Below, piece by piece: positions 9,917-15,275 of a stretch of DNA of 64,000 nt (position 1 is its first letter; every line of letters starts with the position of its first letter). The translations under genes and the position numbers were made by a program. The stretch is taken from the sequence record PP496440.1. The stretch is one strand, 5' to 3'. The notes beneath the pieces were generated by a model that was given only the letters and a program-made list of their open reading frames with translations, searched no databases and was not told the origin of the DNA.

Positions 9917-11125
9917 TTATGCAGAGGGTACAGGATCCCAACTAACCTTGAATACTTTTCCGAGGTATTTGACAACCCGGCTGTAGTTCTTGGACTCGTC
10001 CATAATGCCGATCACGTAGTTGAGCACGTCACCCCGGATCTGTGACTGACTCCACGCTTGGGGTACACCTTTCATGTAGTCCTGTGCTGGACCTGGAATC
10101 CACTTGGCGCTGGCTGCGGAGTGCAACGTCAGGTTAGTAGCACTCATCTCTGTCAGCTTGATCGCACCCAAGTCCCGGAGGACCAGCATCAAGGTGTTGA
10201 TTGCCCGGTAGCTTGGCAGGTCCATATTGCGGCATACGCCTTGAACCGTGGCGAAGTCGATGAACTCATTGGGCTTGAACATTTCCGCAGGCTTAGGGTA
10301 ATGATCGATAACCTTGAATGGTTCGTAGTACGGCCCCTTCTCAGTCTTAGGCGGTTCCTTTTCCATGGATCTAACCAGATCGTCGATAGCCTCCGGACAC
10401 ATTGAGTTCTCACGTCGCGGTTCGCTGACGATGGTTGCCAACACCTTAGGGGCATCCCACTTGGCTGGCTCTTTAACTGACAACGGCGGCGATGGGTCAA
10501 CGGCCAGCACTGGCGCTGGAACTTCCGGTTTGGCCGGGGTCACCGGCTTCGCAGGCTGCGTTTTGGGCGGCTTTGCTGGTTTGGCCGGGGATTGTGTAGC
10601 TTTCGGCAGTTTGTTCAAGGCGGAGCGTTTCACGGGCTTGCGAGTGGCGAGCATGATGTCGAGCGTGTGCTTGGTCTCAGGACACTTGCACGCGTTCATC
10701 AGATCCACGATGGCGTTGATCGGCATCATCATGCTCTCAGCTTGCAATTCTCCGTCAGGAATCTTGATCGGTTTGCTTTGGCCTGGCTGACGTACTATCT
10801 CAAAGTGCAGCAGGTTATCAGCCAGTCCCGGAATGTTGGCCCAGTACTCACAGACGGCTTTGATGTCATCGTGAGTCTTCGGCAGTTGAAGCAGATGCTT
10901 GCGCAGGGACGCGCCGGAATAGGTGAGCCCGCAAGACTTGAGTGCCGAAGCAATCTGCTCGAATGAGGCGCCATACGTACGCATCCTGACAATACCCGGT
11001 AATGCCTTGTCCAACAACAACTGTACTTCTTTTCTTAACTTACGCGGCCCATCATAGTCGTACTCTTCAGCCAGCTTTAGGAACTGGTCAAGGTCGAACT
11101 GTGGTTTATCAGTTGTGTCTTTCAT
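9917..11125 (-). CDS. Hypothetical protein, possible N-terminal helix-turn-helix, Pro/Lys linker
   Basis: GASFEQIASALKSCGLTYSGASLRKHL; PAKP repeats. Confidence 0.6.
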   Translation of the reverse strand: MKDTTDKPQFDLDQFLKLAEEYDYDGPRKLRKEVQLLLDKALPGIVRMRTYGASFEQIASALKSCGLTYSGASLRKHLLQLPKTHDDIKAVCEYWANIPGLADNLLHFEIVRQPGQSKPIKIPDGELQAESMMMPINAIVDLMNACKCPETKHTLDIMLATRKPVKRSALNKLPKATQSPAKPAKPPKTQPAKPVTPAKPEVPAPVLAVDPSPPLSVKEPAKWDAPKVLATIVSEPRRENSMCPEAIDDLVRSMEKEPPKTEKGPYYEPFKVIDHYPKPAEMFKPNEFIDFATVQGVCRNMDLPSYRAINTLMLVLRDLGAIKLTEMSATNLTLHSAASAKWIPGPAQDYMKGVPQAWSQSQIRGDVLNYVIGIMDESKNYSRVVKYLGKVFKVSWDPVPSA

Positions 11126-11187
11126 TTAGGGTAGTCTCAAAGTGGGAGGAACCTACGCATTGCAGGTCCACCCCGGTTGCTTCGGTG

Positions 11188-11481
11188 TTACTCTGACGAG
11201 ACGTTGACGATGGTTACGCCTTCACATTCCTTCAGGCGATTGATGAACTCCTGAATAGCCTCTGCTGGGTCCACGTAGAATATCTGGCGGGCCACAGCTT
11301 CTACGTCGAAGAAGCTAGCGTCGGTATGAACTGCCAGACGACTAACGCTTCGTATGGTGGACTGCTGACTACCCGATTCCGTATCTACATCAACGGACCC
11401 GGACAGGGTTACCATAAAGATAGTAACCTCCGTCGATGTTCCCGGCTCAGAATCCACATTTGGATCTTGTGTATCATTCAT
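11188..11481 (-). CDS. Hypothetical protein
   Basis: 97 aa ORF overlapping the recA-like stop. Confidence 0.65.
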   Translation of the reverse strand: MNDTQDPNVDSEPGTSTEVTIFMVTLSGSVDVDTESGSQQSTIRSVSRLAVHTDASFFDVEAVARQIFYVDPAEAIQEFINRLKECEGVTIVNVSSE

Positions 11482-13030
11482 CTTCTACTTCCTCTTCTTC
11501 CTCATCCAGACCAGCGCCGGACAAGTGGTTGAAATACAACTCCAGGCCACGGCCCGAAGAAATCTGTGCGGCCAGCACTTCACGGATGTCGAAGTCTTTC
11601 ACTTCCCATTCCGCCGTCAGCTCCTTGCGGGCCTTGCCTTTGAACAGGACCAGTTGCTTCAGGTCTTCCCACGTCAAGTCCAGTTCAGGGATAGACTTGC
11701 TGTCGGCGTGCAGCGTAAAGGTCTTCATGTTGCCGGACAGCTGACCGGTCATACGCAGGTAGTACCACGTATCCCAGACCGGATCGAAGCCACGACCTTT
11801 ACCACTGGCGTCGCTGATCCACAAGCGCTGCCAGATTTCAAGGTTGTCAACCCCGTACTTGTTCTTGATCGCCTTCATATTGATGAAGCGATAAGTGTCT
11901 GTACCGGACGCGCCTACGCTTGGCTCTTCCATCGTGGCGCCAGTGGCCGAGATGAAGTCCGGGCAAGCGCGAGGGGTTTGCATGATCCGTGCACCGGTGG
12001 CGTGTTTGATCGCCATGCCGCCAGGTTCATAGTTCGGGTTACCCATTCGCATGCCCGGATTCTGACGGATCTGGTTGATCGACACCACGGTCGCCATTTT
12101 CTTCCGCAGTCGGCCCCACACCTTCTTGATGTGCTTGGAGTGCATACGTGCATCCAGAGCCATACCCCGGCTACCGTCACCGTCTTCCCCTTCGTCTTCC
12201 TCGGTGGTCATCGAGGCAATGGAGTCGAGCAGGATCAGACACTGCATCATGCCGCCGTTGGGCGACTTCATCCGCAGCTTGCCTTTGTAGACGGTGTACT
12301 TGCCCTTGAACTTGCTCATGTTCTCTTTGGTGCGGTCATACAGCAGATACCACTCGCCGTTGATATGCACCTTGTCGGGCAGCTTTTTCAGGATCGACGA
12401 CATCACCTTGTAGAACTTCTCGCCCGACGATTCGTTGTAGTAACGAACGCGAGGTGGGACTACGTAGTTGCCTTTATCGTCCTTCACGCCGAACATACGC
12501 TTCATGCTGATCTTGATGCCTTGGGCTTCGAGCATGTTGACGATGTAGTCTTCGGCACCGGTGTTCTCATAGTCCCACCAAAAGGACATTGGAACGCCAG
12601 CCAAACAGATGGAACCCAACCACGACATCAGGTTGGTGGACTTGCCCGAACCTTCCGGCCCCGAGAAGTTATACCAGCCGCCGGGATAGATACCACCCGC
12701 CAGCATCAGGTCGGTGCACAGCATCCCCGTGGACACTCGCCCTTCCCGGAGGATCTCCAAGTCCGATACACCTTGGACGATGTTGAAGTGTTCCTCCACC
12801 TCGTCGATCATGGCAGTGACGCCCATCATCTCAAGGATTTCGTCTACCATGTCTTCGCGAGACTTGGGTGGCGCTTCAACCTTTGCAGCGGCTGCTTTGT
12901 TGGCCCCACGCTTGGCGGGTACCTTGGCGTCCTCGATCAGCTTTTCCGCAAGTGCGCTGACCTTTTTCTTGGTTGCTACCGTCGCAGTCTTGACGGGTTT
13001 AGCTTTAGCTCTGGTAGTGGCTGCTGCCAT
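11474..13030 (-). CDS. uvsX: RecA/UvsX-like recombinase
   Basis: Walker A GPEGSGKST, Walker B ILLDSIA, INQIRQNPG...PGGMAIK; start reassigned to ATG 13030. Confidence 0.85.
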   Translation of the reverse strand: MAAATTRAKAKPVKTATVATKKKVSALAEKLIEDAKVPAKRGANKAAAAKVEAPPKSREDMVDEILEMMGVTAMIDEVEEHFNIVQGVSDLEILREGRVSTGMLCTDLMLAGGIYPGGWYNFSGPEGSGKSTNLMSWLGSICLAGVPMSFWWDYENTGAEDYIVNMLEAQGIKISMKRMFGVKDDKGNYVVPPRVRYYNESSGEKFYKVMSSILKKLPDKVHINGEWYLLYDRTKENMSKFKGKYTVYKGKLRMKSPNGGMMQCLILLDSIASMTTEEDEGEDGDGSRGMALDARMHSKHIKKVWGRLRKKMATVVSINQIRQNPGMRMGNPNYEPGGMAIKHATGARIMQTPRACPDFISATGATMEEPSVGASGTDTYRFINMKAIKNKYGVDNLEIWQRLWISDASGKGRGFDPVWDTWYYLRMTGQLSGNMKTFTLHADSKSIPELDLTWEDLKQLVLFKGKARKELTAEWEVKDFDIREVLAAQISSGRGLELYFNHLSGAGLDEEEEEVEDE

Positions 13031-13053
13031 GGAGATGTACCTGCGTCGTAAAT

Positions 13054-13094
13054 AAAAATGGGGCACCGACCAGCGAACCGGCAGATGCCCCATT
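13054..13094 (-). terminator. Intrinsic terminator downstream of the read-through extension
   Basis: AATGGGGCA/TGCCCCATT stem with UUUUUAUUU on the minus strand. Confidence 0.75.
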
Positions 13095-13110: not shown

Positions 13111-13287
13111 TCACTTACGTGACTTGCGACGCTTCGCTTTGACCGTACTCACCGCCTTGAAGCCGGGCTTATTGTAGTCCGGTCTGGCATCGGCGGCGAG
13201 GTTGAACAACCCCCCGCTGCTCGGGTCAAAGCCTTTGGCGGATCGGCCCTTCGGCTTACCGCCGCCGGACTTACCGCCGGCCTGCAG
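13111..13287 (-). other. 58-codon in-frame basic extension after the UGA of the acidic protein (read-through candidate)
   Basis: LQAGGKSGGGKPKGRSAKGFDPSSGGLFNLAADARPDYNKPGFKAVSTVKAKRRKSRK then TGA at 13111-13113; no ATG. Confidence 0.6.
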
Positions 13288-14091
13288 TCACTCGATGTCG
13301 AGTTCGATCTTCAGCTTTTTGGCCGCTTTGACGATCTTGTCCTTGCCCGCTTCGACAACTTTCTCGACGATGGCGTCGGTGTCGTCCTTGCGGCCGATGG
13401 TGATCTTCAGCGCTTTGGCCAGCGACTTCAGTTCGTCTTCGTCCAGCTCTTCGAGGGCGTCTTGGAGTTCTTCTTCCTCCTCTTCTTCCTCCTCGTTTTC
13501 TTCTTCCTCTTCTTCGCCGTCGCCCAGTTCGATTTCCAGCTCTTCAGCTGCGTCACGAACGTCGTCTTCGTCTTCTTCGAGGATCAGCGCGATGATCGCG
13601 TCTTCGTCGTCTTTCTTGCCGACTTTGATTTCCAGCTCTTTGGCCAGCGCTTTGAGGTCTTTGAGGGAAAGTTCACCGAGTTCGGCTTCGAGGTCGCCTT
13701 CCTCTTTTTCGTCTTCTTCCTCCTCCTCCTCGTTTTCTTCCTCTTCCTCTTCTTCGGATTCCTCCAGTTCGAGGTCGATGTCCAACGCGTCGGCCGCGTC
13801 TTCGATGTCCGACTGGGACGCCGCTTCGGCCAGAGCTTCGGCCATGGCTTCTTCGTCAGCGCCCTTGGCGAACTTGACCTTCAGCTTCTTGCCCAGCTGC
13901 TTCAGCTCGTCTTCGTCCAGATCGGCCAGCGCTTCGATCAGTGCTTCCTTGTCGTCGCCCTTTTCACCGCCGCCTTCTTCGTCCAGCTCTTCCGCCAGTT
14001 CAGCGATTTCGGCGAATGCTGCCTTGGCCTTTTTGTCCTTGGTCGCTTCTGCTGCTGCTTCGGCCAGTTCGATGATTTTTTCAACAGACAT
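13288..14091 (-). CDS. Extremely acidic protein with three Rho-N/HeH-like helical repeats
   Basis: LDEDELKQLGKKLKV, LSLKDLKALAKELEI, LDEDELKSLAKALKI separated by poly-Glu linkers; AAAGAGGA RBS. Confidence 0.85.
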   Translation of the reverse strand: MSVEKIIELAEAAAEATKDKKAKAAFAEIAELAEELDEEGGGEKGDDKEALIEALADLDEDELKQLGKKLKVKFAKGADEEAMAEALAEAASQSDIEDAADALDIDLELEESEEEEEEENEEEEEEDEKEEGDLEAELGELSLKDLKALAKELEIKVGKKDDEDAIIALILEEDEDDVRDAAEELEIELGDGEEEEEENEEEEEEEEELQDALEELDEDELKSLAKALKITIGRKDDTDAIVEKVVEAGKDKIVKAAKKLKIELDIE

Positions 14092-14173
14092 GGTACATCC
14101 TCTTTACGGGTAGGGTGCCAACTAAGGCTCTTTAATCAACGGGGCGCCGTTTGGCTCACCCCGTTATACGAAT

Positions 14174-14189: not shown

Positions 14190-15275
14190 TCAGCGACGAC
14201 TTGAACGCGAGGATCTTGTCGAAGTTTTCTCTTTGTCGCGGCTGGTACGGCTGCTGCGTTCCGACCGGCTCGACGTTGATTTACCGGACTTCTCCGGCTT
14301 ATCCGCTTTCGCAGTCTTTTCACGGCGGGAAGTACGCTCTGGCTTCTCTTCACGGCTACTGCGCTTGCTGCCTCGCAGTGGACGATCCGATTCACGTTTA
14401 CGCTTGCTGCCCCGGTCAAGGTCCTTACTGGCTTTCTTGCCTTCTTCCTCGACTTCCTCGGCGTCTGGCGCTTTGGATTCCAAGTTTGCCACTTCCTTTA
14501 CAGCATCAGCATAAGACAGCGGCTGATCGAGGTTGCCTTCGATATCCCACTGCAGATACTTCTGCTCGGTGCGGGTCAACGGAGTAGGGCCAGAGCTGGA
14601 ATCCAGTTGCACGTCGTACATGTCCGACGCCGACTTCGCGTCTTTGTCGTAGGACACCAGCAGGTCACGACCAAACTCAGGGTCGCCCAGCGCCATGATC
14701 TGCACGCCGTTCTTGGTTTTGACCTTGTTGGTGTCTTCCAGCTTCTTGATCTTGCCAGCGATGCGGTCAGTAACCCGCAGTACACGAACCGGGGTCCACG
14801 ATGCGCTGGAGATGCTGTCCATGAAACCGGACTTCTTCTCGTTGGCCGACGGATCAGGAACACGCTTCGGCTCGCTGTCTTGCAGTTCCCGGACGATGAC
14901 GTTCAGATAGTAATACTTCTGCGTCTTCTTCGGGTTTTCGATCTCAGCGAACGGGCACTCGATGGTGGTGTCGAACGTGTCGGCCTCACGGTCGAAGTTC
15001 AGCGGGGTGAACGGCAGATCGATCGGCGTGCCATCGTTCTTGTTGATCGTGATCCGATACACCACCTCGGGGATTGGATCGCCGACGATACGCACCGCGA
15101 TAAAAGAACCGTTCGGTGGGTATTCCAGCATCTTCACTTTCTTGTTGAAGTAAACTTTCTTGCCACCGGTCTGGCCAGCATTGGTCGCACCGAAACCTTT
15201 ACGAGCTGGGGCAGCACCAACGCTACCACCTCCGCCAGTACGGCTACGACCGGTTCTTGCACTGTCACGTGCCAT
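14190..15275 (-). CDS. T4 gp32-like single-stranded DNA-binding protein with basic RS-rich tail
   Basis: VRIVG...CPF...YYYLNVIVR...DPEFGRDL...YDV...PTPLT pattern; upstream of uvsX. Confidence 0.6.
   Translation of the reverse strand: MARDSARTGRSRTGGGGSVGAAPARKGFGATNAGQTGGKKVYFNKKVKMLEYPPNGSFIAVRIVGDPIPEVVYRITINKNDGTPIDLPFTPLNFDREADTFDTTIECPFAEIENPKKTQKYYYLNVIVRELQDSEPKRVPDPSANEKKSGFMDSISSASWTPVRVLRVTDRIAGKIKKLEDTNKVKTKNGVQIMALGDPEFGRDLLVSYDKDAKSASDMYDVQLDSSSGPTPLTRTEQKYLQWDIEGNLDQPLSYADAVKEVANLESKAPDAEEVEEEGKKASKDLDRGSKRKRESDRPLRGSKRSSREEKPERTSRREKTAKADKPEKSGKSTSSRSERSSRTSRDKEKTSTRSSRSSRR

Follow-up and report, generated by a model that had tools for sequence, protein, structure and literature searches.

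The window analysed here is a stretch of 64,000 nucleotides (nt) from sequence record PP496440.1, and it matches Pseudomonas phage vB_PpuM-KoPa-5 (hereafter KoPa-5) with 100% identity over the region, the record position being the window position + 62000. KoPa-5 is a jumbo myovirus of the Estonian CEPEST collection that infects P. putida and possesses a double-stranded DNA (dsDNA) genome of ~201 kb. On the minus strand, to which the coordinates of all features of this locus refer unless marked otherwise, the gene order is a sigma factor, two hypothetical genes, a single-strand DNA-binding protein (SSB), an open reading frame (ORF) for a highly acidic protein, an unannotated gap of 257 nt and a UvsX-like recombinase. 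The acidic ORF (KoPa5_00096, annotated as a hypothetical protein) and the gap behind it are the subject of this analysis. As read from the sequence, a ribosome-binding site AAGAGGA (14098–14104) is located 6 nt ahead of the ATG start (14089–14091), and the 267 codons of the ORF (13291–14091, or 13288–14091 with the stop) end in a UGA (13288–13290) in the context GAG UGA CUG. The same frame then stays open for another 58 codons (13114–13287), up to a second TGA at 13111–13113 that is seen both in the sequence and in the genus alignment. An intrinsic terminator (13050–13094), composed of a GC-rich hairpin (~13057–13094) and a T-run, is positioned 16 nt past this second stop, and the extension therefore lies inside the transcript. 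The hairpin folds with −28.6 kcal/mol (z −3.8). An earlier note, made from the letters of the window alone, had described this layout, terminator included, and had proposed that the UGA is read through to give two isoforms. The layout was confirmed, and the comparative evidence supports the proposal: we estimate a probability of roughly 0.7 that the acidic ORF and the 58 codons are translated as one unit, across a leaky UGA that separates them.

The peptide encoded by the extension is basic, with an isoelectric point of 11.2, a net charge of ~ +12 and 15 Lys+Arg residues. Alignments divide it into a Gly/Lys-rich linker (codons 1–19, 13231–13287), a conserved short motif (codons 20–34, 13186–13230) and a polybasic C-terminal end formed by the last nine codons (13114–13140). 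The earlier note had also remarked on the preferred codons of the extension, and this holds: the coding log-odds of frame 0 is +0.51 per codon, as compared with 0.53 ± 0.25 for genes, and no off-frame window scores that high. The openness of the frame is by itself weak evidence, since at least 58 open codons follow the stop in 15% of the 58 putative genes in the window. The extension gave nothing above threshold against Pfam, PHROGs and PDB sequences, and it is unannotated in all 11 GenBank records.

Within the genus, KoPa-5 was compared with eight further phages that are 90–99.9% identical over the region. All nine retain the TGA, the second stop and the open frame between the two. Across the genus, the extension carries six isolated substitutions, every one of them synonymous and at codon position 3 in the read-through frame; the non-synonymous changes are clustered in the linker and the last codons. 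The motif stretch carries one synonymous change among the nine genomes and is otherwise identical. Between KoPa-5 and Peetri, the identity is 94.3% for the extension, as against 88.0% for the acidic core and 88.1% for the SSB gene.

Beyond the genus, the extension as a tblastn query returned two very weak matches (expect value (E) ~9), in the Vibrio coralliilyticus phages GR7B and GR11A. Both fall exactly in the unannotated gap upstream of recA, the product of which is 48–49% identical to the UvsX of KoPa-5. Each of the two phages presents an acidic repeat ORF, a TGA, 44 or 50 in-frame codons with a polybasic end, a TAA-TAA and a terminator. Two metagenome contigs encoding UvsX relatives, from a large protein collection, extend the comparison: in L012 (UvsX 53% identical) the TGA is followed by a 79-codon extension, and in L013 (UvsX 49% identical) by one of 41 codons. 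The comparison thus covers five lineages, namely the KoPa-5 genus (nine phages), GR7B (L010), GR11A (L011), L012 and L013, or 13 genomes and contigs altogether; over the four lineages outside the genus, the identity to the UvsX of KoPa-5 spans 47–53%. All five share the same synteny and layout: an acidic ORF with helix-loop-helix repeats, a TGA, a homologous in-frame extension, a terminator and UvsX/RecA. The terminator comes directly after the extension stop also in GR7B, L012 and L013.

The three parts of the extension are recognizable across this set. An Asn/Gly-rich stretch, N-G-(K/G)-S, related to the linker lies directly 3′ of the stop in the other lineages, and a Lys/Arg-rich end is found in five of five. 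The motif, FDPSSGGLFNLAADA in KoPa-5 and YNPSSGGFFNEAPDA in GR7B, takes the form aromatic-[D/N]-P-x-S-G-G-[L/F]-[F/L] and is common to the five lineages, with L012 keeping part of it only. In the comparison of the GR7B and GR11A extensions, the proportion of synonymous sites that differ (pS) is 0.66 in the read-through frame and that of non-synonymous sites (pN) is 0.09, which corresponds to a ratio of non-synonymous to synonymous rates (dN/dS) of 0.06; in the other two frames, dN/dS is >1. No stop occurs in frame 0 of any of the six aligned extensions (KoPa-5, Peetri, GR7B, GR11A, L012 and L013), as compared with 0–3 stops in frame 1 and 5–9 in frame 2. By these measures, strong purifying selection acts on the extension in the read-through frame and in no other, and we regard the cross-genus comparison as the decisive evidence. 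The earlier note had held that a conserved stop with an open, selected frame behind it in related phages would speak for read-through, and a sense codon at the stop or a lost frame against it. The former was found in all five lineages, and neither of the latter among the extension-bearing homologues. At the level of sequence, conservation extends to the arrangement, the UGA and the peptide, and the peptide is selected in the read-through frame.

The stop codon itself is as constant as the peptide behind it. All nine genomes of the genus have TGA at this site, and so do GR7B, GR11A, L012 and L013 at the homologous position (5/5 lineages), although TAA is the dominant genomic stop in these lineages. 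TGA ends 20 of the 58 putative genes in the window of KoPa-5 (~34%) and 16% of those in 50 kb of GR7B, and its usage is low in the small samples from GR11A, L012 and L013. With a background of ~11% TGA in the pooled AT-rich relatives, five TGAs taken as independent draws would have a probability of ~5e-5, a rough guide given that the lineages share ancestry. Synonymous sites between the lineages are saturated. Two relatives of the acidic protein without an extension have TAA-TAG (L016) or TAA (L017) as their stops, with a terminator behind each (the hairpin was folded for L016). The leaky codon therefore accompanies the extension, and the tight codon is seen where it is missing, as the five lineages have TGA and L016 and L017 have TAA.

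The surroundings of the stop are less constant. The codons directly after it are CTG, AAG, AAG, GCA and AAA in the five lineages, and neither a conserved +4 to +9 context nor a downstream RNA structure of the kind that stimulates read-through was found in them. The earlier note had pointed to the UGA-C context and to two hairpins after the stop. The context is present in KoPa-5 (UGA CUG) and is not conserved elsewhere; the GCCGG/CCGGC hairpin does lie 6 nt after the stop, but neither hairpin is thermodynamically unusual or common to the lineages. The z-score of the KoPa-5 RNA after the stop is −0.94 relative to shuffled sequence, and the KoPa-5 hairpins were ruled out as read-through stimulators, being no better than shuffles and not shared between the lineages.

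Several observations weigh against read-through. The whole case for it is comparative, and no proteomics or ribosome profiling is reported in the published description of these phages. The total stands at five lineages after scans of IMG/VR, JGI metagenomes and GTDB genomes; no further relatives were found in IMG/VR (with the extension, UvsX and two alignments as queries), in the JGI metagenomes or in the GTDB genomes. In the comparison of KoPa-5 with Peetri, conservation of the terminator region (98.8%) and of UvsX (95.7%) matches that of the extension, so that the genus alone is not decisive for selection on the peptide. The +4 base varies: it is C in KoPa-5, G in one other lineage and A in the remaining three. 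For the 96 nt around the stop, folding is not better than that of shuffled sequence in four of the five lineages (z −0.9, 0.0, −1.2, −2.7 and −0.9), and the structures differ. Finally, GR11A has an in-frame ATG six codons ahead of the motif, with AAGGG upstream of it, and independent initiation in that lineage is conceivable.

How, then, would the two products arise? UGA is the stop codon most prone to read-through (PMC7026636), and in E. coli bacterial UGA read-through by Trp-tRNA in competition with release factor 2 (RF2) is established (PMC10570021). We propose that most ribosomes terminate at the UGA, which would give a 267-residue polyanion with three SAP/helix-extension-helix (HeH)-like helical modules and poly-Glu linkers. 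A minority would decode the UGA with a near-cognate tRNA, probably Trp-tRNA, and proceed to the second stop, which would give a minor isoform of 326 residues. The long isoform would be the same polyanion (~ −74) carrying a +12 tail composed of the Gly/Lys linker, the motif and the polybasic end. Because no stimulatory element is common to the lineages, read-through would be expected at a basal level, presumably a few per cent or less, and the yield may be very low. As neither a dedicated decoding system nor a conserved stimulatory element was found, basal leakiness of the UGA would be the simplest mechanism, and read-through the probable route of translation of the extension.

As to the tail, it could serve as a binding handle, for nucleic acid or for a replication-recombination partner such as SSB or UvsX, that is placed on a small and fixed fraction of the polyanion. 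The earlier note had suggested that the tail may tether the protein to DNA or into the capsid. A more specific version is that the tail is a regulated docking peptide, in which the motif binds UvsX, SSB or a clamp and the polybasic end binds nucleic acid, while read-through sets the anchored fraction of a DNA-mimicking polyanion and, through the levels of host tRNA-Trp and RF2, tunes it. We consider this version unlikely, though worth stating: if true, this would be the first accessory factor in a dsDNA phage replisome to be controlled by read-through. As a speculative idea, the motif might mimic a recombinase-polymerization or clamp-binding peptide. A recurring docking motif was ruled out, since a single occurrence was counted in the KoPa-5 genome, and likewise in 50 kb of GR7B; with one occurrence in the genome of KoPa-5, it is not a general docking motif of several proteins.

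An alternative to read-through is that the extension is made as a separate small protein, by internal initiation or by termination-reinitiation at a weak or non-canonical start. The ATG of GR11A mentioned above could serve such a route, as could an in-frame GTG two codons ahead of the motif in GR7B, and in the related contig L020 gene calling places a gene with a GTG start and Shine-Dalgarno-like sequence behind an in-frame TGA. The candidate starts of GR7B (GTG), GR11A (ATG) and L012 (TTG) all lack a canonical Shine-Dalgarno sequence, as do all five lineages, and all are downstream of residues that are already conserved: similarity between the lineages sets in 3–5 codons past the stop, ahead of all candidate starts. 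In KoPa-5 and L013, the motif is not preceded by any in-frame ATG, GTG or TTG. The statement of the earlier note that the KoPa-5 extension contains no ATG and no convincing ribosome-binding site proved correct, the only in-frame alternatives being a TTG at codon 27 and a GTG at codon 46, both without Shine-Dalgarno sequence. The peptide lies in the frame of the upstream ORF in five of five lineages, has never been called by gene callers, and has no free-standing homologue in a profile search of 5.8 billion predicted proteins. Independent initiation is therefore unlikely, there being no in-frame start ahead of the motif in two of the lineages, no canonical Shine-Dalgarno sequence, no reinitiation codon after the stop and no free-standing homologue. 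A separate protein would also leave the invariant TGA unexplained, and we judge this alternative improbable.

Somewhat less probable still is the possibility that translation of the extension is mainly regulatory, with ribosomes that pass the UGA reaching the terminator and altering transcription into uvsX. Such a function would be compatible with the isoform model, and the extension stop is indeed 3–16 nt from a strong terminator hairpin ahead of UvsX/RecA in every lineage. A terminator near the end of a gene is ordinary, and it is present also in the extension-less L016. Moreover, a purely regulatory function needs no particular peptide, yet the dN/dS is 0.06 and a motif is shared across genera.

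It is also very improbable, to a greater degree than either of the above, that the open frame is untranslated, be it the decaying former C-terminus of a protein hit by a nonsense mutation or a conserved 3′ untranslated region or RNA element that is open by chance. The equally long open stretches behind 15% of the window genes would fit this, and so would the fact that, within the genus, the non-coding terminator region is more conserved than the extension. Against it, the TGA and the open frame persist across lineages saturated at synonymous sites (pS 0.66), and the substitutions fit the codons of frame 0 only. A dead remnant would gather stops or frameshifts, and the six aligned extensions have none in frame 0; the codon usage is gene-like, and there is neither an Rfam match nor a common RNA structure.

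The least probable alternative, decoding of the UGA by a dedicated system (selenocysteine, or a suppressor tRNA of phage or host) with the long form as the main product, could appeal to the use of UGA for selenocysteine and in known phage stop-codon reassignments and to the KoPa-5 hairpin just 3′ of the UGA, but ARAGORN found no suppressor tRNA in the complete KoPa-5 genome, TGA ends about one third of the window genes, there is no Rfam match of the selenocysteine insertion sequence (SECIS) type, and no hairpin is conserved in position or sequence across the five lineages. In the Rfam searches, SECIS included, nothing matched at E up to 10 for the window region or at E up to 1 for GR7B, GR11A, L012 and L013, and a SECIS element after the UGA was ruled out on this ground and for want of a conserved hairpin. 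General recoding of TGA in L013 was likewise ruled out, as the one other in-frame stop, in the intein-bearing RecA frame, is not TGA. The single ARAGORN call in the KoPa-5 genome is tRNA-Gly-like and lies within coding sequence: an 81-nt tRNA-Gly(GCC) at L022 8051–8131, within KoPa5_00006. The record has no locus tag KoPa5_00007, and the call is probably a false positive or a tRNA call overlapping a coding sequence.

Read-through of a stop codon is a textbook strategy of RNA viruses and of the RNA phage Qbeta. The closest precedent is the coat protein of Qbeta, where read-through of the UGA produces A1 in minor amounts (Weiner and Weber 1973, as cited in PMC7026636 and PMC8310308). As in Qbeta, a single leaky UGA at the end of an abundant phage protein would be followed by continuation of the same frame, a major short and a minor long form would result, and the ordinary host translation machinery would suffice. 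Different from Qbeta, the phage here is a dsDNA jumbo myovirus, the gene belongs to replication-recombination and not to the capsid, and the predicted extension is short (41–79 residues), basic and disordered-looking. Nothing links it in sequence to the Qbeta protein, a relationship for which no test was made. Programmed frameshifts in tailed phages, as in the tail assembly chaperone pairs and T7 gene 10 (PMC8310308), resemble the present case in that recoding lets a dsDNA phage make two proteins that share their N-terminus, at a fixed ratio; here, there is no frame change and no slippery site, and the event takes place at a stop codon. In the stop-codon reassignment of crAss-like and other large phages (PMC7886860), a stop within a phage coding region is likewise read as sense. 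Reassignment affects many genes and usually involves a suppressor tRNA, whereas here a single gene is concerned, TGA is otherwise a normal stop and no suppressor is encoded. The addition of a peroxisomal signal to MDH1 and LDHB by read-through (PMC4207609, PMC5133446) offers a parallel in which a leaky UGA puts a short C-terminal motif on a small fraction of an abundant protein, and in which the extension was recognized by its conservation. Those cases are eukaryotic and require a defined, short sequence context around the stop; the present lineages have no conserved context.

Our literature searches found no description of read-through in a gene of a tailed dsDNA phage or in these phages. The case is one of a known kind of recoding, read-through, in an uncharacterized protein family. 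The comparative evidence is unusually clean, with codon, frame and peptide alike conserved between Pseudomonas and Vibrio phages. If the reading is true, annotation pipelines overlook a class of phage protein isoforms, and an orphan family of highly acidic proteins in jumbo-phage replication modules gains its first functional handle. It would also be a natural use of basal UGA leakiness in bacteria without a stimulatory RNA element, and the conserved motif would be a concrete target for interaction studies.

The acidic core has 107 Asp+Glu residues and a net charge of ~ −74. In the AlphaFold2 model, built from a 10-sequence alignment, it consists of three confident helix-loop-helix-helix modules joined by disordered poly-Glu linkers (predicted local distance difference test (pLDDT) 85.8, predicted template modelling score (pTM) 0.34). 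Searches of Pfam, PHROGs and PDB sequences gave no match above threshold and hence no family assignment. Below threshold, the core matched SAP, Rho_N, DUF7440 and Slx4-type HeH modules, with profile scores of 14.9 bits for Fan1_SAP and 15.9 bits for Rho_N, both under the cut-off. A Foldseek comparison of the model with the PDB gave a local match to a SAP domain that is not significant (probability 0.66, E 5.4).

A tblastn search of the acidic core against phage records matched the KoPa-5 genus only, and a word-indexed protein search gave one protein only, in a different genomic context; an exhaustive HMMER search detected 16 distant relatives. Among these, P0045 combines an N-terminal domain of SSB type (PHROG 14578, E 3e-9) with the same acidic repeat modules behind it, and in P0044 these modules follow an N-terminal domain whose sole match is a PHROG of unknown function. 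In P0042, P0036 and P0039, a Gly/Lys-rich basic C-terminal tail is fused to the acidic repeats within the same ORF, so that acidic repeats with a basic tail are a natural and recurring architecture, one that by its sequence relatives appears to be linked to single-strand-DNA-binding proteins. The helix-loop-helix repeats and acidic linkers of the core resemble the C-terminal tails of SSB-type proteins in other phages (P0045 and P0044), and may correspond to the SAP/HeH (Rho_N-like) modules of phage DNA-metabolism proteins. In KoPa-5 they form a separate protein, beside an SSB that has a basic tail. Given the SSB-linked relatives and the position of the gene between SSB and UvsX, we suggest with low confidence that the acidic protein is an accessory of replication or recombination.

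Another member of the family, P0035 (L020 5001–6161, JGI 3300051198 Ga0502774_0000167; L021 2659–3819), also ends in TGA. Six codons on, in the same frame and with no stop between, a 108-aa Cys-rich gene is called, with the GTG start and Shine-Dalgarno-like sequence mentioned above, and P0047 fuses both parts in one ORF (E 1e-8 and 5e-6). The arrangement may be a second case of candidate read-through within the family, or else the result of a gene fission, and it suggests that the family may repeatedly put C-terminal modules behind a UGA.

More distant loci of this kind differ at the corresponding site. Where UvsX is ≤40% identical to that of KoPa-5 (L018, L019, L028 and L029), an SSB with an acidic tip stands directly before RecA and there is no extension. 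An unrelated acidic protein occupies the site in L027 (UvsX 40%) and L014 (42%), and a KilA-N gene in L015, again with no extension. The relatives with an acidic-tipped SSB upstream of RecA (L018 3628–4947; L028 2–103; L029 1–276) have no separate acidic protein, and the acidic function may have moved from the tip of SSB to a separate gene in the KoPa-5/GR7B clade.

Of the neighbouring genes in KoPa-5, the SSB (14190–15275, annotated; PHROG 15004, E 9e-33) is located upstream and has a basic, Arg/Ser-rich C-terminal tail. The downstream neighbour is the UvsX/RecA-like recombinase (11474–13030, annotated; Pfam RecA, E 6e-15). Homologues of UvsX/RecA contain intein/homing-endonuclease insertions (Pfam LAGLIDADG_3 and Intein_splicing) in L013 (453–3962), P0007, P0010 and P0013. 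Alongside these intein-bearing homologues, the UvsX matches in Erwinia phages come in two pieces.

Opposite the acidic gene, an antisense Ser-rich ORF of 303 codons (13202–14113, plus strand) mirrors the GAA/GAG-rich coding strand and is almost certainly spurious; gene pickers based on ORF length would favour it over the real acidic gene. In L012, two adjacent sub-threshold Rfam matches to isrG (10622–11172, minus strand; 39.9 and 29.5 bits, gathering score 100) have low E-values and may be a tandem repeat or a structured RNA. Outside the window, KoPa-5 possesses QueC-like, QueE-like and GTP cyclohydrolase genes (L024 31654–33994; L025 18379–22059), and a TGT-domain protein lies near the locus in the Vibrio relatives (L010 1–187). 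Together, the Que-type genes and the TGT-domain protein suggest 7-deazaguanine modification of the phage DNA.

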